The notes under the pieces were generated by a model. It saw only the letters and a list, made by a program, of their open reading frames with translations. It was not told where the DNA came from and made no database searches. A DNA stretch of 64,000 bases from Trichoplax adhaerens (Eukaryota > Animalia > Placozoa), in contig NW_002060955.1 of the NCBI RefSeq assembly GCF_000150275.1, forward strand, positions 1,634,024 through 1,698,023, given 5' to 3'. How positions within the stretch are numbered: position 1 is the stretch's first letter; each line of letters opens with the position of its first letter. This document shows positions 522-64,000 of the stretch, one piece after another. The position numbers were made by a program, and so were the translations under genes.

Positions 522-1784
522 ATACTAAAACAATACGAAGTATTGGAAGAGAATTCTATTTCGGACTTTTCAGCTCTGGTAGTGCTGGTGCAACGGTAGC
601 TGCTATCGTCACAGCTCTAGATAAATCTGCCGCCATTACTGTTAGAAATAACTATTTCAATACAGCTACTCAATACAATGTTTCATCTTACAGCTCGACA
701 ACCGTAAAACTTAAAGCAACAAGCGAAAATAGAGTAACTGGAATAGCTTCGAAGACAATACATATCACTTCAGATGAAGATATAACTGTTACCAGTTTAC
801 AAGCATCTAGCACACTAGCAAGTTCATGTCATATTTTACCAGTCCAATTTTATGGTAAAGAATATGTTATTGCCACGTATACTCCTCTTATTTATGGACA
901 TATGTTAATAATCAGTAAAGATGCCAACACACAAGTTGAGATTAGCTTCCCAAGCAATACTAATTACGGAGGGCAAACTTATTCTAGAAATAGGAATCTG
1001 ACGATTAATTTACTACCTAATCAAGGATTCTTTTTCCAGATCGCGCAAGATCTAACTGGAACAATTATATATTCTAACAAAGATATCTCAGTTCTAGCCG
1101 GAAATCTTTGCGCTAACGTTCCTACAAGTAACAGATATTGCGAGCCTTTACAAGAACATTATATACCAAGTAAATACTTAGGCCAAAATTATATATTATC
1201 GACATTTACTGGTAGAGCAGCTGGAGATATATATCGTATCGTCGCCGCTTACGATAATACTACGGTACGCCTTCAATCAGCAAGTTCAAATTACAATTTA
1301 TCCCGAGGCGAGTTTACACAATTCGAGTTAGCTAGCGGCACTGATTCGTTTCTTACGTGCGATAAGCCATGTCTAGTTGTACAGTTCGCTAAAGGAACTA
1401 ATGCAGATCTTAAGGGAGCTGATCCGTTTATGACAATCGTACCAGCAATCGAACAATATAGTAACAACCTCGTAATAACCGTACCATCGTTATTTACAAT
1501 ATACAATATCAATCCAAATTACGTCTTAATCACGATACAAGATAAATATAAAGACGGATTAATGTTAAATGGAAAAGTATTACAAGGAATCAGTTGGCGA
1601 CAAGTCACTACGAATGATGTAAGTAATGTTTACTCTACAGCATCTATAAATATTTCGATTGGTACAAGCAGATTAACTCATAATGACAGTAGTATGACAT
1701 ATGGAGCCATTCAGTACGGTTGGGCTTCTGGTTCTATAGGTTATGGTTCATTTGGCGATATACAATGGTCTACAATGTTTTCTT
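522..1784 (+). CDS. Exon encoding IgGFc-binding protein N-terminal (FCGBP-N-like) domain of aGPCR 1
   Basis: Acceptor AG 520-521, donor GTAAGT 1785; same frame as ORF 902..1828. Begins (D)TKTIRSIGREFYFGLF; contains ILPVQFYGKEYVI, DLTGTIIYSNKDISVLAGNLCANVP..CEPLQEHYIP...LGQNY, CDKPCLVVQF, DPFMTIVPAIEQY, all typical of the IgGFc_binding family. Confidence 0.85.
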
Positions 1785-4700
1785 GTAAGTCAATTGAATT
1801 CACAGTCTACGATAATCGTATTCATTAAGTATATTTAAATTTTTATAGTAAGATCGTTCATGCATAGTATTTTAACCTATATAAGTAACGAAACTATAAT
1901 CTTACTTATACAGTAGTAAGATATTACTTATCATAAATAATAGAATTAGTAGGCTACAATATATAATCTCGTATAATCATCTATAATAATAATTGCAAAC
2001 GTTCTGCTACCGTATATCTACGAAAGCAATTCTAAATTTAACAATTGNNNNNNNNNNNNNNNNNNNNNNNNNNNNNNNNNNNNNNNNNNNNNNNNNNATA
2101 ATGTGACAGTTAGAGCTTCTACATCAGTCGGATTCGGTCCTACTAGTCCATTCGTGTCAGTCTTGACACATCAATCGGGTAAGATATTATACAGTAACAT
2201 TGTATTTGCTAGTTGTTATCAATTAAGACGGTAATACGACGTAATTTATATAGATTATAATACAATAAAAGTTTGTAAGATTACTAGTCTTATTCGATCT
2301 TAATTCAAAAAATAAATACACTTAATTAACTGTGAATTTAGTGTACTCCGTAATAAAGTAAAATAAAGTTCTTGATCTAGAGTAAATTCTAAAATAGATC
2401 GATGATGCTCACAATGTGCTTGATTCTTTGTTTATAGTACCTAATACCTATCCATCAGATGTCAATGTAACAACGTTAACATCGACCTCGATTTATATTT
2501 CATGGCAGCCAATACCATTATTCGAGCGTAATGGCATTATTACAGTTTACAATATTAGTTACCATTCCTTACAACGGAATCACAACGGTATAATCCAAGT
2601 CGATGGCTTAACATTATCTAACGTGCTATCTAATCTGCTGCCTTACACTACGTATAATGTGACAGTTAGAGCTTCTACATCAGTCGGATTCGGTCCTACT
2701 AGTCCATTCGTGTCAGTCTTGACACATCAATCGGGTAAGATATTATACAGTAACATTGTATTTGCTAGTTGTTATCAATTAAGACGGTAATACGACGTAA
2801 TTTATATAGATTATAATACAATAAAAGTTTGTAAGATTACTAGTCTTATTCGATCTTAAATCAAATAAATACACTTAATTAACTGTGAATTTAGTGTACT
2901 CCGTAATAAAGTAAAATAAAGTTCTTGATCTAGAGTAAATTCTAAAATAGATCGATGATGCTCACAATGTGCTTGATTCTTTGTTTATAGTACCTAATAC
3001 CTATCCATCAGATATCAATGTAACAACGTTAACATCGACCTCGATTTATATTTCATGGCAGCCAATACCATTATTCGAGCGTAATGGCATTATTACAGTT
3101 TACAATATTAGTTACCATTCCTTACAACGGAATCACAACGGTATAATCCAAGTCGATGGCTTAACATTATCTAACGTGCTATCTAATCTGCTGCCTTACA
3201 CTACGTATAATGTGACAGTTAGAGCTTCTACATCAGTCGGATTCGGTCCTACTAGTCCATTCGTGTCAGTCTTGACACATCAATCGGGTAAGATATTATA
3301 CAGTAATATTGTATTTGCTAGTTGTTCTCAATTAAGACGGTAATATGACTTAATTATAAAAAAATACAAAACTAAATTTTCAAGAATGCTACCTCTACCC
3401 GGTAGTAATACATAAATAATATACTTAATTGTTTCATTTAAAACGTGATCATCGAATTATAGAACCTAGATCGTATCCTCAGAATATTACTGTCTCAGCT
3501 TTATCAGCTACTGCTGTCCAAGTCTCATGGCAGCCATTAAATATATCTGATCGAATTGGTACTATAACTGCATTCAACATAAGTTATAATTCGACTCAAT
3601 GGAATAGTAATGGGATGATTCAAGTTAACGGGTCTACAAGATCAATAGTGATACAAGATCTGATTCCATTTACTTCATATGTAATTATTATACGAGCAGC
3701 TAATGCTATCGGATTTGGACCGAAAAGTCCAGCTATATTAGCCGCAACTAGGCAGGCTGGTCTGTATCTATTATTATTACATAAACTAGTAATCAATGTA
3801 AAGGTCAATATTTACTTCCAATGTAATTTTTCACCTTTTAGGATAGTAGGTTATGTAAAATATATAATTAAGTCTGTGACATGTAAATTGTTGAGAAATG
3901 TGCTAACGTAAATTCTTTATNNNNNNNNNNNNNNNNNNNNNNNNNNNNNNNNNNNNNNNNNNNNNNNNNNNNNNNNNNNNNNNNNNNNNNNNNNNNNNNN
4001 NNNNNNNNNNNNNNNNNNNNNNNNNNNNNNNNNNNNNNNNNNNNNNNNNNNNNNNNNNNNNNNNNNNNNNNNNNNNNNNNNNNNNNNNNNNNNNNNNNNN
4101 NNNNNNNNNNNNNNNNNNNNNNNNNNNNNNNNNNNNNNNNNNNNNNNNNNNNNNNNNNNNNNNNNNNNNNNNNNNNNNNNNNNNNNNNNNNNNNNNNNNN
4201 NNNNNNNNNNNNNNNNNNNNNNNNNNNNNNNNNNNNNNNNNNNNNNNNNNNNNNNNNNNNNNNNNNNNNNNNNNNNNNNNNNNNNNNNNNNNNNNNNNNN
4301 NNNNNNNNNNNNNNNNNNNNNNNNNNNNNNNNNNNNNNNNNNNNNNNNNNNNNNNNNNNNNNNNNNNNNNNNNNNNNNNNNNNNNNNNNNNNNNNNNNNN
4401 NNNNNNNNNNNNNNNNNNNNNNNNNNNNNNNNNNNNNNNNNNNNNNNNNNNNNNNNNNNNNNNNNNNNNNNNNNNNNNNNNNNNNNNNNNNNNNNNNNNN
4501 NNNNNNNNNNNNNATGGATCATTGTAAATTATAGCATAAGCTATAATTCTACTCAATGGAACGATTATGGTGTCCTGGAAGTTAATAATTCCATAATGTC
4601 ATTTACCCTACACAATTTAATCCCCTACACAACTTACAGAATTACGCTTAAAGCAGCTACAGTCGTTGGCTTTGGACCGGAAAGTCCAGGTTTAACTGTA

Positions 4701-7700
4701 ACTACGCACCAAGCAGGTTAGATTACTCAATGATCATTATCTGAATTTAATTGAACTTAATATATTTTACCTTTCTATACTGATAAAGTAAAGTAGTTAG
4801 AATATTAAATTATGTAGTTATAGCGTATTCTCATGATGAAAGTTATTTTTTGATATGTTTCTTAATCAAATATAAAACAGTGCCAGGGTCGTATCCGCCC
4901 TACATAAATTCATCCACGTTATCCGATACCGCAATTAATGTTTCATGGCAGCCATTACCGCTAATGGATCGTAACGGAATCATTGTCTTATATCATGTTC
5001 AGTATCGTTCTCTTCCATGGAATGATAACGGTGTAGTTCAAGTTGTTCCACCTAATACTACAACTGTATTAAATAATTTGATGCCTTACACAACCTACTA
5101 TATCAGTGTTAAAGCGGCTACGGTGATCGGATTTGGATTAGCTAGCCCAAATACCTCATCTATTACGTACCAAGCAGGTTTGATTTGACATAATGAGAAA
5201 ATAGAAATATAACTTTTATTTGTACTTTGTTTCGATTTCCATAATTACATTCAAATCAATTGACTGATTTCTAGAACTAAAGAATATTCTCTTGTTTGTT
5301 TTGCTTTTAACTTGTCGGAAAATATGAAATTCCATTATATTACAGCCCCGAGATCATATCCGAAAAATATAGTTTTATCAGTAACTTCGGCCACTACCAT
5401 TGATATTTCGTGGCTACCACCAGCCCCTTTTGATCGTAACGGCATTATTGTATCGTATATGATATATTATAACGCTACCCGATGGAATAGAAATAAAGTC
5501 ATTACGGCAAATAGCCCTAGGACAGCGATAACACTAAACAATTTAGTACCTTATACTACTTACTACATCGGTATTAGAGCAGCAACTGTGATCGGATTCG
5601 GACCAGAAAGTCCATCGAAATCATCTACAACTCACGAAGCAGGTTACATGCAAATTAATTTAAGTATTAAATTTAGCATAAAACCCCTACAGGCTCTCAA
5701 TTTAAATCTTAATACTTATGAAGAGTTTTTACTTTTAATTGACAGTGCCTCTTTCATATCCGCAAAATGTTAAAGGCATTGCTAAATCCGCTACATCTGT
5801 TCTACTTTCTTGGCAGCCACTCCCTTCAATCCATCAAAATGGCATTATAATAATATATGCTATAAACTATAATTCTACTCGATGGAACGACAGCAGCAAC
5901 ATTCAAATGAATGCAACAGCAAGATCAAAATTAATAACTAATCTGATTCCCTTTACTACCTACAATTTTGTTATGAAAGCTAGTACTATCGTTGGATTTG
6001 GACCTGAAAGTCCAATTGTATCTGTAACGACAAATCAATCTGGTAACTTTGATTTTAGTGTTGTTAATACGTATGATGTTAATAAGATTATTTGTTTACA
6101 TGTTTAATAAGACATCAAATAATAAATATATCATCTCCATATAGCACCTAGTAACAGTCCTCTTGTTCAATCGATTTCCCTTGTAAGCAATAATAGCATT
6201 CGAATTCAGTGGCAAGTATGTTCAAAATTTTAATTATCTGACTTAGTATACTGTTTGAGTTTATATATTAGCTTTGTACGATATTAAGCATATCACAATG
6301 TGCACGTTTTAATAGGTTATCTCAGTAAGGGAACGCAATGGAATTATATTAGGATATCAGCTTGTTCTCAACAATACTAAATTTGGACTTGTTAGCAATC
6401 GTACCCTCTATCAAAATCAGACATTGCTGACTGGAAGATCAAGAAACTATACAGCATTCAACTTGAAATATTTTTCGCAATATAAAGTATCCATATATGC
6501 TTTTACCGTAGCCGGTATGAGCCCCGGTAGTAATGAGTTAACTATCCGCACTTTGCAATCAGGTACACTCATTGGTTTGTTATCTTTCAAACTTATTTCA
6601 CTTCATTATTTCTTACTGGTAGTAAATAGTAAAGCTTATTTAGTCCGTTTTATTGCAAGTTCATTTCAAGAATATGTTGACAATAATGTTATTTAATCAT
6701 GTAATGATGGCAACTAACGAATTTTTGATAGTGCCCAGCGCTGCTCCTGTAGATGTAAGAATATCACCAACAGCCAACGGAGCGACTTCTGCTATAGTGG
6801 CATGGAGTATTCCTACATTATTTAATCAAAATGGTATAATAACTGGTTATCACATTAAATACTTTCCTCTAGATCAACTGCAAAATGAAACTGTAATCAG
6901 TTTAGGTAATATTACGCAATATACACTACTAAATTTAAATCCTAAGCGCAACTACTCCATACAAGTAGCAGCAGCCACTTCAATCGGTATCGGTCCATAT
7001 AGTGCAGCGACTATTTATGAAACGCATGAAGCTGGTATGTCAATTATTATAACGAATTCTAAACCTAACTGAAAATAGCTTTATATCATTCTTTATTAGC
7101 GTAATATTTGATAACAAACATAGCATTTTTGATTATCGAATCGAACAGTTGCTCCAAATGTTACTCAATCACCTCGAAGTAGTGTAGTAAAAGCTGGAAC
7201 TGTTATTAGGCTAGAGTGTGCCGCTACTGGTGATCCTACTCCAACTACTAAATGGATTAAAGATAATCAACCAATCAGTACAGTTTATAATGTATTAACA
7301 AATCCCGGTTATGGTAGACTAATTGTCACAGATATTGGTACGGCAGATAATGGATCTTATTGGTGCCAATTTACTAATATTAAAGCTACTATAGTAACTG
7401 ATGCAGCAATTATAGCTGTGGAGGGTGAGTTGATGGTATTGAACTGATGGATTATATTATGTCTTTTTTTGAAAAGTTCAGTTATTCAAACTTCTTTGTT
7501 CAAACATTTCCTTAATAGACTCCAATACAACAGGATTCTGCATAGATGAAATAGTAAACAACATGCGATGGCCAAAAACTTATGGTGGACAAACTGCAAT
7601 CGTTTCCTGCCCTTCACCAATTCAGGGTATTTTATATATTGCACTATAAATTTAAATTATCTAAAATTTTAGAATTACATTATTGAGTCACATTGTCAGG

Positions 7701-10700
7701 AGAACTGATCGTGATCGGAGTTATTTTATTAATTATATTATTAATAATTTTATTCAATACAGGAAATGCTACACGTTTATGTACTGCTGGAATCAATAGA
7801 GCATCCACTTGGGAACAAATTGATACAACAGGATGTCAGTCACCAGCATTTGCGGCCGCGACCAGTTTGGTAATGATATACATATTTCTATGATATAATT
7901 TTATATTGATTACTCAAGATAAAATTAAGTTGTTAAAAGCTGTATGCTAAATTCTTTTATTCACTTTCATTTTTGTATTGTTACCTAAATATCTTGAAAT
8001 CATAATTATTATCCAGATAAATAAACTAGACTCAATTGGCCAGGGTGCAGCTAATGAGACCTTAACTGAATTGGAGACATTGTCTGCTAATAAGACTTTA
8101 TATGGTGGCGATATTATTAAGGCAATAGAAATCTTAACCAAAATTAATCGCGTTTCAACATGGGTCGACGCACCTTTGCTTACTGTAAGTTCTGTTTCTA
8201 CTTCTCCAATGTTATTCTACTTATACAGGTTATCTCTTTCTAAAAGTACGATGATATTGCAATTATACGTAATTTACTAACCTCATTAAATTAAATTAAT
8301 ATCCCGAAGATAGATTTTATAAATAAAAATACTGCAATATTCATTTGCTATATTATATTTCGATAAATAGAATTATGTGAATGTTCACAGTAACCTACTA
8401 AATTCGGACAATAAGAATGCCTGGAAATATGCAAGCAAGGTATCTTTTGTGCAAAGCGATATATCGTTCTATGGAGATCAAAATAAGTTTAATCTTTTTT
8501 GAAGTTATTGCTTGGCTATGATTTTCTATGCTCTTTGAAATTAAATCAGCCGAAGAGAACATCAAAATTTTCAAATTTTATAGTTTTGTCTAGATATAAA
8601 TGGTAATACAGTTTCGGTGATGGATAATTTGGAAGAATTTGCAAGTAAAATGAATGACACTTCGAATAACAAGACAATTACAATACTATCTAATAACATA
8701 GGTAATAAAACTTATCGCTATTAACTTATTTCGTATAATATAGTGACTGTCTCTTAGAATATATTTTATTATATTGGATATTTTTATGTTGTACGGTATT
8801 ATTTGTTTGTTAATAAATACCTGTTATTTAACTATACTAATATTATAATAATTAATTTAAAATTTGGTATCGTAGTACACATCTTAGACTGATTCACAGT
8901 CGCTTGATAGCAACAAACATGCGCTTAGCTACTTTTCTTTCTGCAATACTTTTGATTGTAGCCATCAACATACGGAAATTGAATACTTTCGATAGCAATT
9001 CTTCCAACATTATCTATGTGGATGATAAAAACCTAGGAACAAACATGCAAATGATAGTGCCGGGAAAAACTGTTCAAAATCATCAGTGTGAGCATTGTAT
9101 ATGATATATTTTCCATGAATAATTAAACGGAATTGAAAACAGATAAATTTATGGATATTTAGATAATTTAGACTTCTATTTAAGAAGTAATTTTTATCCC
9201 TTACATCTTCAGTTCAAAAGCAAGTAATTGTTATATATAAAACTCTTGGTAATTTGATTCCGGCAAATCTACATAGAGATAGGTAATGCTTAGATAATTG
9301 TCTCAGCCATCATGATGTCATCTTATGATATCTGTCATTTCGAGCGTATCATAATTACAGCAATTAAATCAATTCAATCGCTTTTTTTGTTTCCAATGAT
9401 AGGAATGCGACCAGTACTGGTGTGAATAGTGTCAATTCACATATTATTTCAACTTCTATGTATCCTAATGCAGCCAAAAATTTATCTCATCCATTGCAGA
9501 TCACCTTTGTAAATAAAAATGTATGTTAACGAGCTTTCTAAATATTATCTCAGATATTCGATTTCTATCAAATATTAAATTTTCGTAGACTGGAATAATG
9601 GTAGAGAAATTAACATAGCTTTATATATTAATATGTTACGATATTAACTTGAAATAATTTTTAGGTAAATTAAGTTATTTTATAAATTTTATTACAGGCC
9701 ATCAATTCAAATAATAATTATGTTGAAATCTCCTGCACGTTTTGGCAATCTAAATCTGGGTAAATTCTAATATTTTTTCATTGTTAATCTTGTTATCTTC
9801 AACTATATCTAAATTTAAAAGTAGTTTTCTTCATCTTATGATTAATAACTATTTCTAACGTATAGCTGCGTATGAAGGCTACATACAGTATACTTATGGT
9901 TATAATCAATAATATATTAGTAAACATATTTATAATCAGTTTTGTCGTCACCGCAATTTATTAAAGAATCAATTATTTGAGGCTTAAGCAATTATTGCAG
10001 TTAAGATGTAAACCCATTAATACGAAAATAATAATTTGTATAAAAACAAGGAGGAATATGAAAGTCAAATTTTGGCGTAGTGTGTAATTTAACGAATTTT
10101 ACTTACGAAATTAACGGTAAAATGTTGTTAATTCTTGATCAACAGTCTATGCGGATGGTCTACATCTGGATGTTGGAAAGATTTAAAGTCTAATTCAACG
10201 CATACTATTTGCTATTGTAACCATACTACTACATTCGGAACCATTCTTACTCACTTACCTGTAAGTGATTCTTAACTATCAAGTTCAAATAATTCGGTTA
10301 CATGATACCAATATGCAGTCTTAATTTAAGCGAGACTGCTGTCTAGTACAACTAACGTAAACGAACGTTTAATCACCTTATTACGATTTATCCACAATAA
10401 CAATTGATACCAAACATGATACAGATACTGCGGCCTACCCAGAATAATAAATAATCTTAACTAAGTTAAATGTATAAATCAGGATACCATAGAATTTATG
10501 CTATTTAACGTATTGAAATTAACTTAATCATTTACTCAAAGCTGAATACATCCCATTTATAAAAATACTGTTGATTATTAGTAAATTACAAGAAACACGT
10601 TTCCAGCGTTACTATTATATAAACATTCATAGCATGCACACATAAGCTTAAATAAATATAAAACATTAATTTAATACAAAAAGGATCTTAAAGTTTATTA

Positions 10701-13700
10701 CTATTCTTTAATATTAATTTTAATCTCCGTACTCACTGAGTGTTACGGTTTCATTAACTTACTGATCTGATTTTCCATTCAATAATAGCAAGATAAAATT
10801 AAACTGGAAGTTATTATTTATATTGGTTGTGGCTTGGCTAGCTTCTTACTTGCCCTAACTATCGCAATTAATATTATTTATTGGAGGTACGGTATCTACG
10901 TTGATATTTTAATATAATAGCTTTAAACGGCAATATATGATTCATCTACCTGAATGTTAATTAAATTAACTCGTTTGGTTTTAATTTTACAATATTGATT
11001 CTGAAGGGATCATCTGAAATTTTTCTTGCAGTTGATATACGAATACTAACATACTTATAGTGTAAAATGTCATAAAATGTCCATTCATTTGGATAAACTT
11101 ATACATTAGACTTTATTTTAATTTTAGCGAACTTGAGCATTATAAGAAAAAACTCTACATCAATTCGGAATATAATTATATGTATATATATATATAAACT
11201 TAAAACTAACTTCTATCTATTAAATATAAAATTTACTCTTATTTCGATGACTTTAATTCTTGGAAATTAATTAGACGAACTCCTAAAATTCTCGGCATCA
11301 TCAACGTTAGTATGTTCATCTGCATACTTATTGCCAATATCATTGTCATTTTTGGATTAATAGAGACAGAGTCAAAGGTTTGATCTCATATAATATATAA
11401 TTTTAATAAATTGTAGTGCAAAATATCATGTAATGGTAAATGTATATTTCACAGTTAACATTACACATAAAAATTAATTAATCCTTTGATATATAAATGT
11501 ATTCTTATATCTTAAATATAACTTAACCGCAATATGTACTCGTTTAATGTACTCTCTATGTAATAATACATGTAGCTACGATGTACCATCGTGGCAACGA
11601 TCCTACACTATGTGTTGCTTGCAGCCTTTGCTTGGATGCTCTGTCACAGTTTCTACCTATTTAGTTCATTGACCAGCAAAGATGGTAACGGCAAATATTG
11701 CAAAAGCTTTATATTTGCTGCTTTCAGTAAGTACGCTACTAATTAAGTGAAGTAGTCTATCTGATATAAGGTACTGCTCACAAAATCATGAAATAATTTG
11801 TAACATAATTATTATTGCAGATGAAATTTAGTAACTGATTTTAATTTTCACTCCTACACTACTCAATATGGTAATCTATGGGTAAAAAATAGATGATGTA
11901 CAATTAAGGATTTTACTTATTGTGGATGTTATAGTTTTAGCTTTAGCTATTGCCATTGTAACCGCTGCTGTTGCCATTAACGGGATGGGAATGCAAAACT
12001 ATATACAAAATAATTCGTAAGTGAAATACCTATCAGATAAATACTATGGTATCATTAACATCAGCTTTTATCAAATATACGGTGTAGTAGGCCTTAGTGA
12101 GCACCAAGGGGGTGTATTAAGTTAATACTTCCTGCAATTGCCATTAATTGTTCTTTTCATCTATTGTAACGAGCTCACACGAACCTTCTCTTTATAAACT
12201 GAAATAAAGCTAACATTTATCTTAAATTAGTGTAGCCTAACTTTATTATGAGTTACGGCAGTATAGAGTAAGATATAGTAAATCTTTGATCACTTTAGCA
12301 AGCCATGATTTGAAGTTCTTGGTGATACAAATGCAATAAACTTAAATTTAGAATCTTTGAAAAATTAAGCTGATCATTTTATTTGTTATAGGTGCTGGTT
12401 AAGAACTAATCCGCAAATTGTTTTGGTCTTCGTCATTTCTGCGCTGTCGATGACATCGGTAAACAGTGCCGTGCCATAAGATGCATTACTTTTACACTGA
12501 CATTGTCCGCTATTTTCTTTTTATTAGTAATTTATATGTTCGTAATTGATAACACGAAAGATTTTTCTATCTACATTTGACTTTAACCGGTAACACAATA
12601 CATCTAACTATTTGCCTATCGATAAGCAATATTTTTTTAATGCCATTATTTTCTACTACGGAAAATGAGTCGTTATGCGCTATTGCACCGTGAGCATCAG
12701 CATATTATCGAAGATAGATAATAAATCTATTCATTGATTAGTATAGAGACAAACTTTAATTATGTAAAAGTTCTGTAATCTACCGGTATCTCGCAATTTT
12801 AAATTACTGAAATATTTTCGCGAAAAGATTAGCTAGAACGCGAAAAACTTCATCAATTAAACTTCCGTACTTAAAATACGCATTTAAAACTATAATTTAT
12901 TGATGTTCTGTCTAAGCGTTATTTAAGTAGAACCGTTAAAATTTTCTTTCGATTCATGCAAAATAACACCCAGTTGTTCACTTGATAAATAATAATTTTA
13001 AAGCAATATAAAGTATTAGAATGTAAAATTTGACTGAAGTTACTTTTATAGGTTAGTGCCATACTAATTGTACTAGGCTACAAGAATTTAAGACAGACAA
13101 GAAGTATAAAATTACATACCGAAAATGACGTGCCCTATTTAATGAAGTAAAATAAGATTGCAATATCCTATTCTGTAATTGCATTTCCGTTTAAAAGTGA
13201 TCAAGATGTAGCACTGTAATAAACTATCAACAAAATTTTGTGTTAAAAATTTTAGGAGTTTTTTGCCAGCGGCCTTAATTCTCATGCTATTACTTGTTAT
13301 TGACTGGACGCTGTTTGTATTATTTGTTGCCATCGGTAATGTTGTACTGCAATATCTTTTCGCCGTAATCAACTTTTTGCAGGTAAATGTGTAGCATTCT
13401 TAGTTATTGTATACGGTTTGCAGTTTTTGATATTATCATTAACATATTTAAATAAGAATTAGAATTTGGGGACTTTTTCGATTTGATTTAATTATTTCTA
13501 TTTACATCTTCTACCTATTGCTCGTTTATATTTATTTTTACATGCAATGTTCGAATTATGATTTGAAGAGACTACATACAATTCTGTTACTATTTGTCTA
13601 TATTGTAACTAGGAGGTCTAATTAAATTTTATTACTGAAAAAATTCAATTTATTACTAGGCACTATATATATTTGCCTTTTATGGACTTAAGCAAATTAT

Positions 13701-14090
13701 GTGCGGTAATATCGATCAGGTAGGCAATCATGCTCTCAATAATCTAAATATGTGTTACAATTACATATATTTGAAAGTTGTAGGCATGAGTAATCATAAG
13801 TAATATTCTCTCTAGAAAATTTCTAAAGTGTTTGTTTATTAGCTGATGATCTATACTTCACGACCGAATATTACTATAAACTGAATTTTAGAATAAAATA
13901 TTGAATTAAAAGATTAAATTGACAGCAATGAATAACAAAACTATTAGATTATAAAATGAACTGAATCTCTACTTTGTAGATCCTAACTAATAATCAATAT
14001 TATATTACTGTATCATGATCAACCTAGGATCAATCAAAAGCGAGCGAATTGGAATTGACAAGCATCAATAAGCAAAAACCAAAAAAATAA
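522..14090 (+). CDS. Adhesion GPCR 1 (multi-exon): IgGFc-binding - >=10 FN3 - Ig - HRM - GAIN/GPS - 7TM; signal-peptide exon not in window
   Basis: Hand-spliced exons: 522-1784, gap..2178, 2438-2734, 2991-3287, 3463-3759, gap..4716, 4881-5177, 5346-5642, 5746-6042, 6145-6215, 6316-6562, 6732-7034, 7149-7424, 7519-7626, 7763-7869, 8017-8184, 8371-8439, 8584-8701, 8962-9087, 9213-9282, 9403-9520, 9698-9759, 10146-10260, 10789-10886, (11128-11181?), 11275-11377, 11576-11726, 11935-12016, 12392-12458, 13052-13146, 13256-13382, 13660-13719, 14028-14090 (TAA). All visible boundaries are GT-AG with consistent phases. GPS motif CTFW...WSTSGC...CYCNHTTTF; class B2 7TM motifs YIGC, LHY..L..F.WML, CWL, QYLFA..N.LQ. 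Confidence 0.88.
2048..2097. other. Assembly gap (50 N) inside aGPCR 1
   Basis: Run of N; may be a placeholder of unknown true size. Confidence 1.
2098..3345 (+). repeat. Near-identical tandem repeat of FN3 exon plus intron, period ~553-556 bp, ~2.3 visible copies
   Basis: Exon ends at 2178, 2734 and 3287. ORFs 2416..2790 and 2969..3343 differ by two residues, and the introns are nearly identical. Confidence 0.95.
2098..7034 (+). CDS. Array of >=10 fibronectin type III domain exons of aGPCR 1
   Basis: Complete exons are 297 nt, phase 1-1 (last one 303 nt; one domain split into 71+247 nt exons). Motifs P.SYP.N, SWQP, NGII..Y.I.Y, L.PYT.Y...V.A.T..GFGP.S. Confidence 0.92.
3921..4513. other. 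Assembly gap (593 N) inside FN3 array
   Basis: Run of N; sequence resumes mid-FN3 exon. Confidence 1.
7149..10260 (+). CDS. Ig (I-set), hormone-receptor (HRM) and GAIN/GPS exons of aGPCR 1
   Basis: Ig: LECAATGDPTPTTKWIKD...DNGSYWCQFTN. HRM: GFCIDE...RWPKTYGGQTAIVSCP..QGNATRLC...WEQIDTTGC. GAIN: LYGGDIIKAIEIL, HSNLLN..N..AW, YKTLGNLIP, VNSHIISTS, LSHPLQITF. GPS at 9698-10260. Confidence 0.88.
10789..14090 (+). CDS. Seven-transmembrane (class B2/adhesion) domain and short C-tail exons of aGPCR 1
   Basis: TM1 LEVIIYIGCGLASFLLALTIAINII; TM2 ILGIINVSMFICILIANIIVIFG; TM3 CTIVATILHYVLLAAFAWMLCHSFYLF; TM4 FIFAAFILALAIAIVTAAVAI; ECL2 CWL; TM5 IVLVFVISALSMTSVSAILIVLG; TM6 AALILMLLLVIDWTLFVLF; TM7 LQYLFAVINFLQALYIFAFY. 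Confidence 0.85.
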
Positions 14091-27700: not shown

Positions 27701-27892
27701 TTTCCTCAAGGTTCTCATTTGTCGCCATCGTGTCTTGACAATTTCTATTGCAACTGACTTGATGTTCAATACATGCCTACTTTGCACTCGCTAATTGTGA
27801 TGAAAAAAATAAAATTGAACTTCAACTGAAGCCTATCTTGTCTTTTTTTTTTCTTTTTTTTTTAATTTTGACCTTCTCCAACAGTAAGAAAC

Positions 27893-44393: not shown

Positions 44394-44666
44394 NNNNNNN
44401 NNNNNNNNNNNNNNNNNNNNNNNNNNNNNNNNNNNNNNNNNNNNNNNNNNNNNNNNNNNNNNNNNNNNNNNNNNNNNNNNNNNNNNNNNNNNNNNNNNNN
44501 NNNNNNNNNNNNNNNNNNNNNNNNNNNNNNNNNNNNNNNNNNNNNNNNNNNNNNNNNNNNNNNNNNNNNNNNNNNNNNNNNNNNNNNNNNNNNNNNNNNN
44601 NNNNNNNNNNNNNNNNNNNNNNNNNNNNNNNNNNNNNNNNNNNNNNNNNNNNNNNNNNNNNNNNNN
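44394..44666. other. Assembly gap (273 N)
   Basis: Run of N. Confidence 1.
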
Positions 44667-46647: not shown

Positions 46648-49600
46648 ATGAAAATGATCAAGTTGTTATCACTGGTCATCATTTCTATCCACTGTATTTT
46701 TACAGTTCAAGCGCAAAGTAAAATATTATGATCAATTAAACCCTTTAAGAAATTAAAGTAGTGACTTAAATCGTCGGTAGATAAATAGATATTGAAGGGA
46801 AATAAGTGGAACTTGTATTTTCTAAAGTTAATAGTAGAATGCTGCCTAGCAAAATTTTGCTTTATGTATATTTTTCCAGTATGGCATGAATAGCATCTTA
46901 TTTCTTAGTTCTATACGTAAAGCACTCGTACTGTGAAATACGTGTGTTAATTAATCGGTCTATTCAATTAATAAGGCTATTGAACTTCAGTTCAGCATCT
47001 ATACTGTATATTAACTAGGCTAGGCATTATTATGATACTAGGAATTATGGAAATTACTAGGTCTAGAGTTCAATACATGGATAATTCTATAAAATGTGAT
47101 GTTGGAAAATGATCAGTTACCGATGGGAATAGAAAGAGTAAAAAATTAGTTATGAAATTGACTGCGTTATTCTAACATGTTATGATCATGTATATGTACA
47201 AATAGCAGCATGGATAGGATATGTAATAATAATTAACAACTAAATCAGGTAGTTATCGAAATTCTATGCTAGGATACGCTACTGTACTCGTTTGTCTTGA
47301 TAAAATGAAATTTCTGTAATACTGTTTATTCGTAAATCAGATAGCTATCGATTTTGGACTCCAGTCGCACCTAAATAATACCTACTAACACTGAGTTATC
47401 ATAATTATTAAAGTTTAAAATAATTACCGGTACAGTATATCCTACTACACGATTCCATTGCAAGCAAATCAGATAGCGTAGTCGTCGATTTTCGATTTTG
47501 ATAACTTTGAAATTAGATTCGTCTGATTGGATATTGTTATTGAAGTTGATAATTATACCCGTATGCTAGCATTCCCTTATTACATGATGTACTAAAGTAC
47601 GTATTTACTGACAACCTTACTGATGTTTATTGATCGCTTTTATAGTATCGCGGCAAGGTGATGTTCACGAATCTAGCCGTGGCAGAGAATTTAACGTTGT
47701 CATCATGCATGATGCCCCACTGTTCGATAGGATACATATAACCTCCTTCGATCATCCATGTGAAGTCATTGTAACTACTAAAGTCGATAATAAGGCTACA
47801 TCTTATTCGATACCCGCATGGGAAACTTTGACTATAACCCCGAGTATAAGCACTACACTTCAAACTATCGGAGTTTCCAGCAGAATTATAAACATCTTTG
47901 CCGATCAAGATGTTTCTGTAGGAGTATACCAATCCAGGTCGACGAAACAAGATGCATATCGTGCATTACCAGTCAGAACATATGGCAAAGAGTATGTTAT
48001 AGGGCTATACAATAGCACAACGGGAAATTCGCGATTTAGTATTGTAGCAACCGAAGACAACACTGCCATTAGTATACGTACTTCAGCTACGTTAACATTC
48101 AATTCACAAACTGCATCATTAACTGATCCGGTCAATATCACCTTAAATAAGCATGAAGTCTTCTATTATAGTGCTTTAACAGATTTTACCGGTACACAAG
48201 TCTCAGCTAATAAACCAATAGCCGTATTTGGTAACAATATGTGTGCAGCGTTATTGGAAGGGCAATCTACATGTAATTACTTAATTGCTCAATATCCATC
48301 CGTGGAACGTTTAGGGAGCATTTATGTCCTCATTATTAATAATCAAAGAGTCGCAGATGTATACCGCGTTATTGGAGCATATGATAACACTGTTATCACA
48401 GCAACACAGCTCAGCTTGTCTACTACTATCAATAAAGGGGATTATTACGAATTTACTCTCACAATTCCAAGAGCTACAGTATTAAAATGCAGTGAACGTT
48501 GCTTACTCATGCATTACGATCGAGGCGTAAAAAGTGTTGGTTCTCCAAGTCAACCATCCATGAACATTGTGCCTGCAATCGATCAATTCATGACTAACTA
48601 CTTCATGTACATTAAAAGAACATCTCCGCTCTATACTGCATATCCATTTATAACTATTATTATTCCAACTAGTTATAAAGATGGAATTCGTCTAAATAAT
48701 CAACCACTCAGTTCCCATGGCGTAATATGGAATGAACGAGCAGCAGCAGGTGTTAATTATGCTATCACATCCACCACCGTTTCTTCGAGTGGTAATGGTT
48801 ATTTTATCAAGCATATCACGCCCACTGTGAGATTTGGATTAATAGAACACAGTGAATCAACTAGTAGGTCATTAACTAGCCTATCTGGTGGTTTCCAATT
48901 TCCCGCAACCTATCGCTGTAAGCTTATTAATAATACAGTAATTACTATTTTAAAACAGTGTTGCTTATGGATACTAGCGTAATTAAATTACAATTATGAA
49001 ACTGCGTTCTAATGGTAGCATCAGTAAATATTATGGTAGTGCAATTAATTATTGATGTCTTATTTTGATTTTAGCATTTATTACTGTGGTTGAAAATCCA
49101 ATAGCACAAATAGTACATGAAAATCAAGGATTTAACTTAACCTGCAGTGCAATCGGTTATCCATCATTATCCGTTGTTTGGTATAAAGATAATATACTGA
49201 TCACCGCGAATGTGCAAAGAGCTCCATATTCTGGCAATTCAACATTAACTGTTACCTCAAGTTCTTCTAGTAATGCTGGATCATATTATTGCCAGTTCTG
49301 CACTAGTATTGGCTTACTAAATAGTGCATCAGCTCAAATTATTGTCTACAGTAAGTGTTACATTTATCATTAGTAATTTTATCATCTCTATAATCCGTGC
49401 CAATAATTCTACTTACTCTTTATTATAGCCAAACCTGTTGTCAAATCAATTATTGGTGACATTTTTCCAATAGCTGGACATAATTTGGTCTTAACTTGTG
49501 ACTATACCTCTAACAATAATGCTACTGTTACATGGTTGAAAGATAACATCGTAATCGCTAGAGATACTTATTTTAATCTAACTACACTTCGAATACAAAA

Positions 49601-58600: not shown

Positions 58601-61600
58601 TATACAAGTTAGCGGTAATACAACATCCTTGCTTCTTGAAGAATTAATACCGCACACAAATTATAGTATCACTGTTAAAGCAGCTACTATTATTGGATTT
58701 GGACCAGCCAGTATCGGTATAGTTACAAGGACACCACAAATTGGTAAATATCGTATGCTATGATTATAATTAGTCTTGTCACGAAGCAGGCATACAAATC
58801 ATCTTACTTTAATGATATGGATATGAAAATACCTATATTATATACAGGAAAATTTGGTAATATTTAACTGCTATTCATTTTTATTTGTTATTCGTTATTT
58901 GTCGATAGTACCTAGCAGTCCTCCAGTTAACGTAAACGCTACAGCAATATCGGCTTGGTCAATCTCCGTTACTTGGCTACCTCTGCCGATATCAAATCAA
59001 CATGGCGTTATAATTAATTATAATATTTCTTATTATTCTAATAAATGGCAGCAAGGTAGTACTATACAAACTAGCGGAAATATCACAACGTTGGTTCTTG
59101 TTGGATTAATACCATATACAGATTATAACATAACAGTTAAAGCAGCCAATATCATCGGATTCGGACCGGACAGTATTGGTATATTAACAAGAACATTTCA
59201 AGCCGGTAAAACATGTCAAATACTACGACTAAAAATTTAAAACCTTATTAGTAGCTAGTAATATCATCTTGATTTAATATAACTGTAGTACTGTGCACTC
59301 TCTATAGCCAAATTTAATGTAACTAACCTTGCTTTTGCATTTATCACTAAAGTTCCTGGTGCTCCGCCATCTAATATCAGCGCTATGTCGTTAACCGCTT
59401 CGTCAATTTCTGTTAGTTGGCTGCCGCCACCGTTATTGGATCAAAATGGAATCATTATCAATTATAGTATTTCTTATTATTCTAATATACGGATGCATGG
59501 TAGTACTATACAAGTTAGCGGCAATACGTCATCGCAGATTCTTCGCAGATTATTTCCATATACATATTATAATATTACGATTAAAGCAGCAACCACCGTT
59601 GGATTTGGATCCAGTAGCACCAATATATTAACAAATACACTACAAACTGGTAAGCACATCTGATGCTATGATTAACGATGTTAGGCCCATTATAATTAGT
59701 AATTGCAACATGCACAGAACTTTCGACAGTCTTAATTTCTATATGTCGTATTTAATATTTCTTTATTCCTAGTTCCTTCTGCTGCCCCAGCTAATGTTAG
59801 AGCTACAACAATATCTGCTCGATCAATTTCTGTTACCTGGCTACCGCCACCGAAATCAGATCAAAATGGTGTTATAACCAATTATAATATTGCTTACTAT
59901 TCCAGTAAATGGAGCCATGGTGGTGAAATACAAGTTAGCGGCAATATCACAATGCTGGTTATTGATAAATTAATAGCTTACTCAGATTACAATGTAACAG
60001 TTAAAGCAAGTACCATTATTGGATTTGGACCTAAGAGTATCGGTATAATAACGAGAACATTACAAGCTGGTAAGTTTCCTTTGTTAATTATATCGCCTTT
60101 CTACAGCTTCTGCAAGTACTGACTGGTATTATGTTGATCTAATTTAATGATAGTATGAGTAGAATACGCGTGCACTATGTACAGGAACTTCTCGTACGCG
60201 ATATTATTTGTTTCTTATTATATTTTCCATTTACCGTTATATTTTAGTTCCTAGTTCTCCTCCAACTAACGTTAGCATTATTCCGATATCTGCTCGGTCT
60301 ATCTCAGTGAGTTGGCAGCCACCACCGATATCTGATCAAAACGGCATTATAACCAATTACAGTATCTCCTACTACTCCACTAAACGGAGTCATGGCGGTG
60401 AAATGCAAGTTAGCAGTGAAACTGCATCGTTTGTTATTCGTCAATTAATACCTTACACAGATTACAATATAACAGTTAAAGCAAGCACTATTATCGGGTT
60501 TGGACCTTACAGTATGGGTATATTAACAAGAACATTACAAGCTGGTAAGTATAGTACGCTAGTTACATCGCTTTCTTACGCCTTCTGCACCTACTAATAC
60601 GGTATTATGCAGGTCTAATTTAATTATTATACGACTGTAGTATGCACAAGAACTTCTCGTACGCGATATTACTTATTTCCTATTATACGTATATTTCATT
60701 TACGGTTATATTTTAGTTCCTAGTGCTCCTCCAACCAATGTTAGCATTATTCCGATATCCGCTCGTTCTATCTCAGTGAGTTGGTTGCCACCACCGATAT
60801 CTGATCAAAACGGCATTATAACCAATTATAGTATCTCCTACTATTCCAGTCAACGGAGTCATGGCGGTGAAATACAAGTTAGCGGCAATATCACATTGTT
60901 GGTTATTCGTCAATTAATACCTTACACAGATTACAATATAACAGTTAAAGCAAGTACTATTATCGGATTTGGACCTTACAGTATCGGCATATTAACAAGA
61001 ACATTACAAGCTGGTAAGTATAGTACACTAATTGCATCGCTTTCCTACAGCTTCTGCAACTATCAATATCATGCAGATCTAACTTAATCGTACTACGAGT
61101 ATAGCATTGACAAGAATTTCTTGTACTATATTACTTGTTACTTATTATATTGTTAATTTACCATTATATTTTAGTTCCTAGCGCTCCTCCAACTAATGTT
61201 AGCGCTATAGCGATATCCGCTGAGTCTATCTCAGTCAGTTGGCTGCCACCGCCGATATTCGATCAAAATGGTATAATAATCAGTTATAACATCTCCTGCT
61301 ATTCTAGTAAATGGAGTCATGAGAGTGAAATGCAAGTTAGCGGGAATACCACATCGTTAGTTGTTCATAAATTAATACCTTACACAGATTACAATATAAC
61401 AGTTAAAGCAAGCACTATTAATGGGTTTGGACCTGGCAGTATTGGTACATTGACAAAAACGTTTCAAGCTGGTAAGCTTGCCATTCATTTAATTGATCAT
61501 AATGTTTAGCAACTACTAACATCATCTTGATATAATTTTCATTCAATTTATTATTATAGCACCTGCTAGCCCTGTAATACAGAACGTTTCCCTTATAAAT

Positions 61601-64000
61601 AATAATAATACTGTCCGAGTTGGCTGGCAAGTAAGCTGAATGATTTTACTGATTTCAATAGTTATTACCGTTTGAATTAAATACAGCATCTGATGATTTT
61701 TTCTGGCGTCTATCAGTTACCGTTATAGTAATAGCATAGTAATACAAAAAGCATCGTAGGTAAAAGAACCTCCCAAAAAATGATTGATGAAGTAATTGTG
61801 TTAGATTTCTATAAAGACGTTACTTTCATCTACAGTATTCCTATCTATTAATTGAAACTATAGTTCATGATAATTTTCTAATACCAGTTAAACATATATT
61901 TGCCCGCGTAGTATTTAACTCCTAATGTAAACTGTTAACAGAGCGCCAAATATTATTGATCATGTCCTTAATAATACTATATTAGGCTTTATGATGTACC
62001 TAGATCTATGTTCGGCCATAATAAATTATATTGCCACCCAAGTAAATATGACTGCTGGTAATTCCAGTAGAAAGTAGTATTAGCAATTATTTGCTATATA
62101 TTCGAAAAGATCAAAATATAACAACTTGTAAATTTGTCTATGCGATTGTAAACTAGAAGGGTAGTTGCTAGCCAATACTAAATAGTAGTTTTGTAGATGC
62201 AATTCAGAAGCGTAATAAAATTTACTTTATCCTCAGGAATATAAAAAGATAGTATCATGATGTTATTCTCAATGCATTTCATTTTATTTTACTATTATAT
62301 AAACTAGTTAATACCAGAAAGACAACGTAATGGTATCGTTCTTGGATATTATATCGTCTTCCGTAATACCAAGTTTGGATTTTTCGATAATCGTACTATT
62401 TACGTTAACCAAACAACGACCAACGTCAACACTAGATATTATAGTGCTGCTAACCTAAAGTATTATTCAACCTATCTAATATTCTTATACGCTTTTACTG
62501 CTGCGGGCACAAGTCCAAAAAGCTTACAGAAATCGATTGAAACATTAGAATCAGGTCAGTATCCATGAAACTTTTAGTAAACTATCTTAATTTATTGCGT
62601 AAACAGTATTTTCAGGTAACGAAAAATTTATTTTACACTAGCTGCATGGATATTTTTACAAAAATTGGGCGCCATTACGCAATAAAATATTATACCAATT
62701 CGTTATAGGCTTATTAATATTATAAAGTTTAAGTATACCTGTAAACCTATCTACTGAACAAAGATATAATGTATAATAAGCGTACATATTGTTACTGAAC
62801 ATTCACTGTGTTTATATTGACTCGCAGTCCCTTCGGCATCTCCGATCAATGTAATGACTACATCTGGAACTTTAGCTGCTACATCAATCGTTATTAGTTG
62901 GAGTCCACCTCTGCTAGTCAATCAAAACGGAATTATCACAAAATACAAAGTATCATATTCCCTGCAAAATAAAAATAGTTTGTCTAATAGCACTATTATT
63001 ACGCTCGGAAATGTTAATCAGCACTCCATATACAATTTGCTGCCATCTACTAATTATTCCATACTAGTAGCGGCAGCAACTTCGGTTGGCTTCGGACCAT
63101 ATAATTCACCCGTTACTCATTTAACTTATCCAGCAGGTAATCGACTAAATTTAAAGATTAAAATCATTTCACACTACTAATACAGTCTTTGATATTATTT
63201 GTAACCAAATGAAATAGTGGCTCCAAATGTAACCCAACAGCCTCGGAACAGAACTGTTGCAGCTGGAACAGATATAACCCTAGAGTGTAGAGCAACCGGT
63301 GATCCAGTACCTACTGTGCAATGGTTGTCCAATGGCCAATTAGTATCATCCATATACAGCGTTGTTACTAAAGCTGGTTATGGAAGTTTATTCATAAAGA
63401 ATAGTAATACAGCAGATAATGGAACTTATCAATGCCAATTTACAAATAGTAAAGGATCAGTAATGTCGAACTCTGCCTATATATACGTTAATGGTAATCA
63501 AACTACTCCATTGAGTAGAAGTTTAAATATATTTTTAAGTCAACAGCAGCCCGATATTGCTTTTCATTTAAAAGTCATATACTAGCGCTAATAATTTCTA
63601 ACGTATAGAAAAGCAATCGTTAGAATATACCTTGAAAGAAATTTATATTGATATCCTATTTCTTTTTTGTGATTATATGGTATATCAGATGGCAACATTA
63701 CAGGGTTTTGTCTTGGTGAAATTACAAGTGATATGAAATGGTCTAAAACATATAACGGTTATACTGCGATAGCAAAATGCCCTGTATCTGCTAAAGGTAA
63801 AAATCTCTATTTTGATTTACATGTTAATTTTATCGCTTGCAGAATTGATTTCTAACACCCAATATACCTGTTATAAATAGTTTAATTTTGCAATTAAAGT
63901 TGTCTTCTATAAATTAAATATGATTCTATGATCAGGTAATGCTACTCGTTCATGTAAGCTTAATACCAATGGCAATTCCGTATGGGATGATATCGATACG
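46648..64000 (+). CDS. Giant receptor gene 2, paralog of aGPCR 1 (3' truncated by window): signal peptide - IgGFc-binding - 7 Ig - 14 FN3 - Ig - HRM...; probable adhesion GPCR
   Basis: Signal peptide exon 46648-46717 (MKMIKLLSLVIISIHCIFTVQAQ); IgGFc exon 47646-48917; Ig exons 49075-49350, 49429-49689, 52648-52923, 53129-53416, 53879-54157, 54328-54585, 55049-55345; FN3 exons 55975-56295, 56467-56775, 57015-57311, 57521-57817, 57983-58279, 58447-58743, 58909-59205, 59353-59649, 59773-60069, 60248-60544, 60717-61013, 61175-61471, 61560-61630+62308-62554, 62828-63136; Ig 63218-63493; HRM 63689-63796 and 63936-end. GAIN/7TM are not visible and are inferred from paralogy. Confidence 0.87.
47646..48917 (+). 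CDS. IgGFc-binding (FCGBP-N-like) domain exon of gene 2
   Basis: ORF 47630..48982; SRGREF, DAYRALPVRTYGKEY, DFTGTQVSANKPIAVFGNNMCA, CNYLIAQYP, MNIVPAIDQF. Confidence 0.87.
49075..55345 (+). CDS. Seven immunoglobulin (I-set) domain exons of gene 2
   Basis: Each exon is phase 1-1 and has C...W..D/N and D/N/Q.G.Y.C-type motifs (e.g. LVCQIQGEPSPTISWLKD...DSGSYKC; LNCQANANPVPTFTWYKD...DAGSYNC). Confidence 0.92.
55975..63136 (+). CDS. Array of 14 FN3 domains of gene 2, including ten paralogous 297-nt exons (57015-61471)
   Basis: Repeated VPS.PP.NVS....SA.SISV.WLPPP...QNG.I.NY.ISYYS..W.HG...QVSGN...L.L..LIPYTDYNITVKA.TIIGFGP.S.GI.TRT.QA; exon spacing about 420-510 bp. Confidence 0.93.

Follow-up and report, generated by a model that had tools for sequence, protein, structure and literature searches.

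We analysed a 64,000-nt stretch of the Trichoplax adhaerens genome (contig NW_002060955.1; hereafter the window, C1402:1634024-1698023 in a 105.6-Mb AT-rich assembly of 1,414 contigs), which very probably holds two anciently diverged paralogous placozoan genes, each encoding a giant adhesion-class (B2) G-protein-coupled receptor (GPCR) with an FCGBP-N-like head. In both genes the order is confirmed as an IgGFc_binding head, an array of immunoglobulin (Ig) and fibronectin type III (FN3) exons, a further Ig domain, HRM, GAIN with its GPS, and a seven-transmembrane (7TM) region. Gene 1 extends from window position 522 to ~13803 on the + strand, with at least 2,000 codons visible, and gene 2 runs on the same strand from ~46648 to 6.3 kb beyond the window end (contig C1402 up to ~1704358), amounting to ~3,200 codons in ~45 exons. 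The head is predicted to be an all-beta, FCGBP-N-like domain of ~420 residues; the rod is built of Ig and FN3 modules of one exon each (7 Ig and 14 FN3 in gene 2, no fewer than 10 FN3 in gene 1); and the membrane-proximal block common to both genes comprises Ig, HRM and GAIN with GPS, followed by a 7tm_2-type 7TM with a short tail. This reading draws directly on domain matches, the exon layout with its open frames, gene 2 RNA that is spliced from FN3 to TM2, and the occurrence of the architecture at 9 loci, whereas the splicing of head to rod is predicted, in both genes, from the genomic sequence. Briefly, Pfam profiles were scanned exon by exon or open frame by open frame, reading frames were checked exon by exon, and the flanks were examined for 20 kb downstream and 10 kb upstream of the window; numbers above 64000 (“window-equivalent”) extend the window numbering.

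RNA evidence comes from gene 2, for which junction mapping covered window-equivalent positions 63001-69000. Within this stretch, one 2,917-nt contig from run X5 aligns as 14 pieces with 13 joints, all GT..AG, spanning the FN3 end (63136), Ig, two HRM, seven GAIN, the GPS and TM1 (68470-68567) exons and reaching into TM2 (from 68910); the frame is open across all 13 joints, and the contig extends ~1.2 kb beyond the mapped stretch. Because it lacks the 13 introns, the contig is cDNA-like and hard to explain otherwise, and the stalk and 7TM of gene 2 thus lie on one transcript. No transcript evidence splits either gene into separate IgGFc and 7TM transcripts, the arrangement that the original prediction had set against its own. 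Further upstream, RNA-type runs contain 24–29% of the sampled words of 47001-57000, a stretch of which exons make up ~38%; this word coverage is roughly what exon-only coverage would give and lends slight support to expression of the N-terminal half. The features of gene 2 are as follows.

44394..44666, no strand: assembly gap 3, 273 N, ahead of the first candidate exon of gene 2, touching no identified exon (flanking + strand open reading frames without domain matches)
46648..46717, + strand: candidate first exon with a putative signal peptide, MKMIKLLSLVIISIHCIFTVQAQ, and a phase-1 donor GTAAAA
47646..48917, + strand: head exon, IgGFc_binding, 424 codons (PF17517, splice sites)
49075-49350, 49429-49689, 52648-52923, 53129-53389, 53879-54157, 54328-54585 and 55049-55345, + strand: seven Ig exons
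55975-56295, 56467-56775, ten 297-nt exons from 57015 to 61471, a split domain at 61560-61630 plus 62308-62554, and 62828-63136, + strand: 14 FN3 domains
63218..63493, + strand: membrane-proximal Ig exon (RNA joints 63136>63218 and 63493>63689)
63689-63796 and 63936-64042, + strand: HRM exons, the second crossing the window end (RNA joints, frame)
Beyond the window, + strand: seven GAIN exons, GPS at 68192-68306, TM exons to 70152 and a candidate stop at 70335 (window-equivalent)

The chain of gene 2 is open from the candidate ATG at 46648, through the junction of the candidate signal-peptide exon with the head exon, to 70152, with AG/GT at each junction. Its head matches PF17517 with E 1.2e-52 (179 bits; open frame 47624-48979), its Ig exons match I-set/Ig_3 with E 1e-12 to 1.5e-19 (AG/GT, phase 1-1, open chain; boundaries predicted from sequence), and its FN3 domains score E 8e-13 to 2e-18, the ten 297-nt exons ranging from 1e-13 to 2e-18. 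The introns joining head, stalk and HRM are mostly <200 bp; the sole long intron of the stalk (2.9 kb, 49690-52647) follows the second Ig exon, and a 135-aa minus-strand open frame within it (50285-50689) matches no Pfam family significantly. Toward the membrane, the first half of HRM matches with E 0.033 (15.0 bits against a cut-off of 26.2; profile positions 3-34) and GAIN subdomain A matches weakly (14.4 bits against 26.5), while the seven exons between HRM and GPS, of a length fitting GAIN, are all spliced in RNA. The GPS, whose motif lies at C1402:1702216-1702314, scores E 5.6e-10 (40.0 bits against 22.5; open frame 68148-68360), and its junction with TM1 is seen in RNA; the TM3 exon matches 7tm_2 with E 1.2e-4 (21.8 bits against 20.6), and other TM segments extend to ~70150. 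The GAIN, GPS and 7TM that the original prediction expected past base 64000 are therefore present, 0.5–6.3 kb beyond it, and gene 2 repeats the full layout.

Gene 1 was read from the genomic sequence, with its membrane-proximal exons obtained by projecting the RNA-confirmed gene 2 exons under the requirement of AG/GT borders and open frames. Its features are as follows.

522..1784, + strand: head exon, IgGFc_binding (FCGBP-N-like), 421 codons, phase 1-1 (Pfam PF17517, splice sites)
2048..2097, no strand: assembly gap 1, 50 N, interrupting one FN3 exon copy among tandem 553-bp exon+intron units
2098..2178, + strand: 3′ remnant of an FN3 exon after gap 1, its end placed by register with 2654-2734
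2438-2734, 2991-3287 and 3463-3759, + strand: three 297-nt FN3 exons (fn3, AG/GT, phase 1-1, open)
3921..4513, no strand: assembly gap 2, 593 N, removing the 5′ part of an FN3 exon
4514..4700 (end approximate), + strand: 5′-truncated FN3 exon after gap 2
4881-5177, 5346-5642, 5746-6042, split 6145-6219 plus 6326-6562, and 6732-7034, + strand: FN3 exons (fn3 E 1.8e-12 to 1.4e-14)
7149..7424, + strand: membrane-proximal Ig (I-set) exon, 276 nt, equal in size to its gene 2 counterpart (I-set E 1e-15, 7133-7444)
7519-7626 and 7763-7869, + strand: HRM exons, 108 and 107 nt as in gene 2
8017-8193, 8371-8439, 8584-8701, 8962-9087, 9213-9282, 9403-9520 and 9698-9759, + strand: GAIN exons, paired exon by exon with RNA-confirmed gene 2
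10146..10260, + strand: GPS exon, ..CYCNH-T|T-TFGTIL (GPS profile)
10789-10886, 11275-11377, 11576-11726, 11893-12016, 12392-12458, 13052-13146 and 13256-13382, + strand: seven 7TM exons (7tm_2, size pairs with gene 2)
13660..13803, + strand: candidate terminal exon with the putative rest of TM7, a short tail and a stop (phase-0 acceptor)

The gene 1 head covers profile positions 4-297 of 297 in PF17517 (E 3e-62, 211 bits; open frame 467-1825), between an acceptor AG at 520-521 and a donor T|GTAAGT at 1784/1785 that sits in the same Cys codon as the donor of the gene 2 head. In the stalk, the exons at 2438-2734, 2991-3287 and 3463-3759 match fn3 with E 1.3e-14, 1.9e-14 and 3.4e-15, the first two being 98% identical. 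Open frames starting at 2398, 2951, 3429, 4787, 5264, 5739 and 6644 match fn3 with E 1e-12 to 3e-15 (that at 6644-7069 among them), and the frame 6316-6693 corresponds to the second half of the split FN3 (partial fn3). Gap 1 has removed the 5′ half of an exon copy: the DNA at 2098-2806 is 98.6% identical to that at 2654-3358, and the remnant (2098-2250) is 98.6% identical to 2654-2806, its translation “..NVTVRASTSVGFGPTSPFVSVLTHQSG” being identical to the neighbouring exons. After gap 2, 4515-4718 matches fn3 with E 2.2e-8 over profile positions 29-83 only. The near identity of the 553-bp FN3 exon+intron units (98.6% over 2098-3358) points either to gene conversion or to a tandem duplication of very recent date, and these units are the likely cause of gap 1. 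Since both internal gaps interrupt FN3 exon copies, only a lower bound can be given for the FN3 domains of gene 1, and the previously claimed figure of at least ten stands as such. Furthermore, every head, Ig and FN3 exon of both genes starts at codon base 2 and ends at codon base 1 (phase 1-1) with AG/GT borders, so the frame would survive any number of FN3 exons hidden in the gaps. The earlier statement that gene 1 reads in frame across its two gaps accordingly keeps its frame compatibility, which follows by construction, whereas continuity across the gaps and the FN3 repeat number cannot be read from this assembly.

Downstream of the gaps, the gene 1 chain is open, with AG/GT at each junction, from 4881 to the stop at 13803. 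Its membrane-proximal Ig exon is 53% identical to that of gene 2. The first half of HRM matches with E 2.5e-4 (21.8 bits against a cut-off of 26.2; profile positions 3-34), and the exon for the second half has no Pfam match yet keeps G.A.R.C...W.....C; GAIN subdomain A gives a weak match (E 2.4e-3, 17.8 bits against 26.5). The GPS matches clearly (E 1.2e-8, 35.8 bits against 22.5), with the TM1 exon next to it. In the 7TM region, 7tm_2 matches the TM3 exon with E 8e-8 (32.2 bits against 20.6) and the TM6-7 exon with E 6e-3 (16.2 bits; profile positions 198-246), and seven hydrophobic segments fall over 7–8 exons in 7tm_2 profile order; in the candidate terminal exon 13660..13803, “ALYIFAFYGL..” would continue from “..VINFLQ”. 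A genome-wide 7tm_2 scan at E <= 0.001 gave no match within the window because short exons score below the scan threshold, and per-exon scoring recovered the 7TM. Many exon sizes are identical between the two genes, namely Ig 276, HRM 108/107, GAIN 69/70/62 and GPS 115 nt, followed by TM1 98, TM2 103, TM3 151, TM5a 67, TM5b with the third intracellular loop 95 and TM6-7a 127 nt. The predicted layout of gene 1, from head through Ig/FN3 stalk, HRM and GAIN/GPS to 7TM, is thus borne out by per-exon domain matches and by the mirrored exon sizes of gene 2.

Upstream of the window, a further gap of 3,292 N ends exactly at the window’s first base and hides the 5′ part of gene 1. Before this gap, 4.7–3.3 kb ahead of the window on the + strand (L003:5319-6709), lie an I-set exon (E 1.8e-16) and then the first ~60–90 residues of a second head exon (“SIGREFHFGYL...”). 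The public protein model P0001, which maps to the window at 100% identity, incorporates both pieces, and the paralogous loci on C1396 and C1397 each hold two head exons ~3 kb apart, while the public model P0003 has the order head-Ig-head-Ig-FN3. The use of the upstream pieces in P0001, together with these double-headed relatives, suggests that gene 1 probably begins upstream of the window and may carry two heads. The description of the receptors as “capped by” an IgGFc domain is therefore unproven for gene 1, whose 5′ end falls in the gap and which has a possible second head. At the edge of the 3,292-N gap we also observed a GC-rich stretch of ~100 bp that differs from the sequence around it and might stem from a misjoined read end or from contamination.

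The same pairing of domains recurs elsewhere in the genome, which contains 23 head exons and 58 GPS matches in 105.6 Mb. At nine loci, which together hold 11 head exons, a GPS follows the head on the same strand 5–21 kb downstream, and by our own arithmetic (58 GPS in 105.6 Mb) the chance of a same-strand GPS near a random locus is ~0.7%; stalks differ from locus to locus in module type and in length.

C1410:729k, C1396:1298k, C1397:485k, C1402 (two), C1401:1379k, C1410:7427k, C1412:2863k and C1414:11117k: the nine head+GPS loci

The proposal of a lineage-specific receptor family is supported by this recurrence. Among public protein models, P0025 (“Hemicentin-2, partial”, Trichoplax sp. H2) combines a signal peptide with head, Ig and FN3 in a single model and breaks off at a contig end; its ortholog is the C1412 locus (94–99% per exon), where a GPS lies 6.4 kb further on. 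None of the public protein models searched has the combination of head, Ig/FN3 rod and 7TM. A query of representative proteins with the head exon returned fragments, bacterial and mucin-type proteins, and none of the 155 head-domain relatives examined has a GPS motif or 7TM cluster; a long head-bearing protein query returned, among the best 8,000 candidates by shared words, only P0025 and bacterial proteins; a search with the gene 2 head yielded just two relatives (36% identity); and look-ups of the exact products gave none for P0001 and P0003 and only short or truncated contigs for P0004 and P0025. These searches were limited by a length window and a word filter, so that their blanks are not proof of absence. 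Literature searches across 8.4 million papers and preprints likewise found no work combining IgGFc with an adhesion GPCR or with Trichoplax, and searches on placozoan adhesion GPCR ectodomains returned no description; the architecture was accordingly not found catalogued. We also observed a head-only array at C1412:787581-801744 (+), with four head exons at ~3.3-kb spacing and no GPS nearby, and a public relative of 7,017 aa (P0002) with 17 head-like stretches, which together indicate that head-only multi-copy proteins exist beside the receptor family.

Several observations weigh against the interpretation of both genes as giant head-bearing receptors. The head-to-stalk link rests in both genes on the open chain, splice phases and paralog annotation, the RNA joints covering stalk to 7TM only, and run X5 was assigned as RNA by guess. 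P0001 goes no further than the head open frame, although this model is an ab initio read-through past the consensus GTAAGT donor. Gene 1 is known from genomic sequence, with two internal gaps and a 5′ end inside a 3.3-kb gap. The GAIN fold and the seven-helix bundle are assembled from separate exon pieces, and the per-exon scores of HRM and GAIN subdomain A fall under the Pfam cut-offs. Finally, the GPS of both genes carries Thr at position -1 in place of the conserved aliphatic residue.

This last point bears on how the receptors might work. The consensus for autoproteolysis is His(-2), aliphatic(-1) | Thr/Ser/Cys(+1), and the residue at -1 (leucine) sits in a conserved hydrophobic pocket; uncleaved receptors can still reach the surface (PMC3321182). 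Both genes read H-T|T rather than H-L|T, which makes self-cleavage uncertain, and the motif CYC[NS]H-T|T-TF is found in five of the nine head-linked loci (genes 1 and 2, C1410:715k, C1396 and C1397), with H-L-T or H-M-T in the remaining head-linked loci and in six unrelated GPS motifs of this genome. The H-T|T site suggests that the receptor may work without autoproteolytic cleavage. An alternative that we regard as possible, if clearly the less probable, is that these proteins are adhesion GPCRs by descent whose GAIN domain stays uncleaved, acting as adhesion or recognition molecules or as conformation-switched receptors without release of an N-terminal fragment. It is favoured by the confinement of Thr(-1) to those five loci when other GPS motifs of the same genome read H-L|T or H-M|T, by the normally aliphatic, pocket-buried nature of position -1 and by the surface delivery of uncleaved GAIN domains (PMC3321182); it is countered by the retention, in genes 1 and 2, of the catalytic His(-2), the nucleophile Thr(+1) and the tethered-agonist Phe(+3).

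For the head itself, an AlphaFold model of gene 1 (36-sequence alignment) is all-beta, with a mean pLDDT of 95.5 and a pTM of 0.94. Foldseek comparison of this model with PDB returned only loose multi-sandwich adhesin- or complement-like matches (TM 0.1–0.15), the gene 1 head profile had no match among PDB sequences, and a wide structural search with the head model aligned a ~100-residue subdomain only (Z 9.7 with 1nc7, otherwise Z <= 7). The model thus describes a compact bundle of ~4 beta-sandwich-like parts without a solved relative. Binding of IgG by FCGBP has been contradicted, and the N1 domain of FCGBP, whose role is unclear, is found in gliding bacteria as well but is missing from mouse FCGBP (PMC11796319). 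The suggestion of a mucus, microbe or IgG ligand is drawn from the domain name and is a guess.

For a working mechanism, the head would bind an extracellular partner (a surface, matrix or another cell) and the rod would hold it up to ~80–90 nm from the membrane, by our own estimate for ~22 sandwich domains. A sandwich domain spans ~4 nm. Binding or pulling would then pass through GAIN to the tethered-agonist strand (TTF..I/L) and on to G-protein signalling. We consider the odds of this scheme, which is proposed rather than shown, to be roughly even; its main alternative is the cleavage-independent variant, and GAIN-mediated mechanical signalling as first envisaged remains plausible while being weakened by the Thr at -1 (H-T|T). 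More speculatively, and improbably on present evidence, the genes could belong to a placozoan-private family of at least nine surface-probing receptors that signal to G proteins on touching biofilm, algal food, mucus or a neighbouring cell. In such a family the five-gene H-T|T subgroup would have become cleavage-independent, and the sensing distance of each receptor would depend on a gene-specific rod length adjusted through tandem duplication of exons.

It is quite unlikely that gene 1 is a decaying or misassembled copy and that only gene 2 works as a receptor. Gaps at 2048-2097, at 3921-4513 and directly upstream of the window, exon+intron units that are 98.6% identical, the odd GC-rich ~100 bp at the upstream gap and RNA evidence that comes from gene 2 only would fit such a copy. 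All readable gene 1 exons from 522 to 13803 are nevertheless open, bordered by AG/GT and of the paralog’s exon sizes, the domain scores of gene 1 are as good as those of gene 2, and recent tandem exon duplication is an expected source of gaps in a Sanger-era assembly. Least probable of all, and very much so, is that each locus holds two units, a secreted hemicentin-like head+Ig/FN3 protein followed by a shorter adhesion GPCR starting near Ig/HRM, with the giant receptor an artefact of exon reading: public models of the split kind (P0001 ending after the head, P0025 named “Hemicentin-2, partial”), the absence of a GPS motif or 7TM cluster from all 155 head-domain relatives, head-only tandem arrays without GPS (such as the four heads at C1412:787-801k) and RNA joints that cover stalk to 7TM rather than head to stalk speak for it, but the RNA contig of gene 2 has its start within an FN3 exon and extends into the 7TM, which assigns the stalk to the receptor transcript, the stalk exons are all phase 1-1 with short introns and no stop from the candidate ATG to TM7, P0001 reads through its GTAAGT donor, P0025 is ended by a contig end and not by a stop, and head and GPS are paired at nine loci.

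Identity between gene 1 and gene 2 is 26% for the heads, 46–53% for the membrane-proximal Ig, HRM, GPS and TM1, and 26–36% for the other TM exons, and these values indicate that the duplication is old. The ten 297-nt FN3 modules of gene 2 are 53–87% identical to one another and 35–47% identical to those of gene 1, while the FN3 domains that directly precede the Ig are each other’s best match across the two genes; Tandem Repeats Finder additionally reports 469-bp exon+intron units in gene 2. FN3 modules more alike within a gene than between genes, and their tandem units, indicate that the rods were lengthened independently by tandem exon duplication. Growth within each gene proceeded by tandem duplication of phase-1-1 exon+intron units as the membrane-proximal exon sizes stayed fixed.

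The DNA between the receptors contains a sugar porter gene of the major facilitator superfamily (MFS, Sugar_tr), on the following open frames, which are not exact exons.

27872-28030 (weak), 34619-34903, 34921-35046, 35670-35849, 35939-36109 and 36327-36539, + strand: sugar porter gene

The frames from 34619 to 36539 match Sugar_tr with E 4.9e-18 to 6.9e-7, covering profile positions 100-444 in order and including a PESPR motif at ~35032, and a probable first exon at 27872-28030 (MADNEG..GGFLFGYDIG) has weak matches to PDB sugar porters (E 0.06). Given this gene, the two receptor genes are not directly adjacent; of the “tandem pair” in the original prediction, two paralogs on the same strand remain, with a transporter gene between them and an old duplication behind them (heads 26% identical). 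Two satellite arrays, of 135 bp x 8 copies (97% match) at 29597-30685 and 155 bp x 3 copies at 31172-31621, occupy a GC-richer stretch (0.40–0.44 compared to ~0.31), apparently within the long first intron of the sugar porter gene, and a 304-aa open frame at 29957-30868 consists of satellite repeat only. Rfam and tRNA scans of the window found none, and the larger intergenic open frames on either strand of the window matched no Pfam family.

Of all GPCR classes, the adhesion GPCRs are the most poorly understood. What such receptors sense is set by the combination of domains in their ectodomains, and an IgGFc_binding head on a very long Ig/FN3 rod, which recurs at nine loci of an animal among the simplest known, adds a combination to those described. 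What is new lies in details, namely the FCGBP-N-like head, the H-T|T subgroup and the lengths of the rods, whereas the receptor class, domain shuffling and lineage expansions are already familiar; for specialists, to whom domain shuffling and lineage-specific expansion of adhesion GPCRs are well known, the finding is a useful addition rather than a surprise. It offers a testable route toward the function of the IgGFc_binding/FCGBP-N1 domain, as well as natural variation at position -1 of the GAIN cleavage site within a single genome, which is directly testable, and it concerns receptors whose public gene models are fragmented or misnamed (e.g., “Hemicentin-2, partial”). If the surface-probing proposal were true, the receptor rods of placozoans, which glide, feed on surfaces and have no neurons, would carry at their tips a head domain whose other known occurrences are in gliding bacteria and the mucus protein FCGBP.

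Compared to known systems, the order Ig, HRM, GAIN+GPS and 7tm_2, or its HRM-GAIN-7TM core, is shared with ADGRA2/3, latrophilins/ADGRL and BAI/ADGRB (structures 4DLQ and 4DLO in PMC3321182), as are a tethered-agonist-like strand after the GPS and a large modular ectodomain. Unlike these receptors, the Trichoplax genes have no leucine-rich repeat, lectin, olfactomedin or thrombospondin (TSP) module and instead carry an IgGFc_binding head with 10–22 Ig/FN3 domains, a GPS reading H-T|T and a very short cytoplasmic tail. Sponge and other invertebrate adhesion GPCRs also place fn3, Ig/I-set, HRM and GPS ectodomains on 7tm_2 (Krishnan et al. 2014, PMC4302439, Fig. 4 legend) and likewise represent a lineage-specific expansion in an early-branching animal, but that study makes 0 mentions of an IgGFc_binding head, and the Trichoplax arrays are much longer. 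Human FCGBP-N1 and its relatives among gliding bacteria and cargo of the type IX secretion system (T9SS) share the same PF17517 domain at full length, and there too it forms the N-terminal end of a long protein outside the cell. FCGBP is secreted and built of repeated vWD assemblies with GDPH cleavage, whereas the Trichoplax proteins end in a 7TM, and among the scanned open frames of at least 60 aa between head and HRM there are no vWD-C8-TIL assemblies, only Ig/FN3; genes 1 and 2 are not members of the FCGBP/gel-forming-mucin-type family. The rods resemble those of Dscam, sidekick and LAR-type receptor protein tyrosine phosphatases (RPTPs), in which Ig and then FN3 arrays are likewise encoded with one domain per phase-1 exon, and stalk exons give weak extra matches to the DSCAM C-terminal Fn3 model. 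Those proteins are single-pass with a cytoplasmic signalling domain, whereas the Trichoplax rod continues, as the gene 2 RNA shows, to HRM-GAIN-GPS-7TM: adhesive ectodomain and 7TM share one polypeptide, the gene 2 contig carrying FN3 through TM2, and in both genes the GPS motif (C..W..W..C..C.C) stands directly before TM1.

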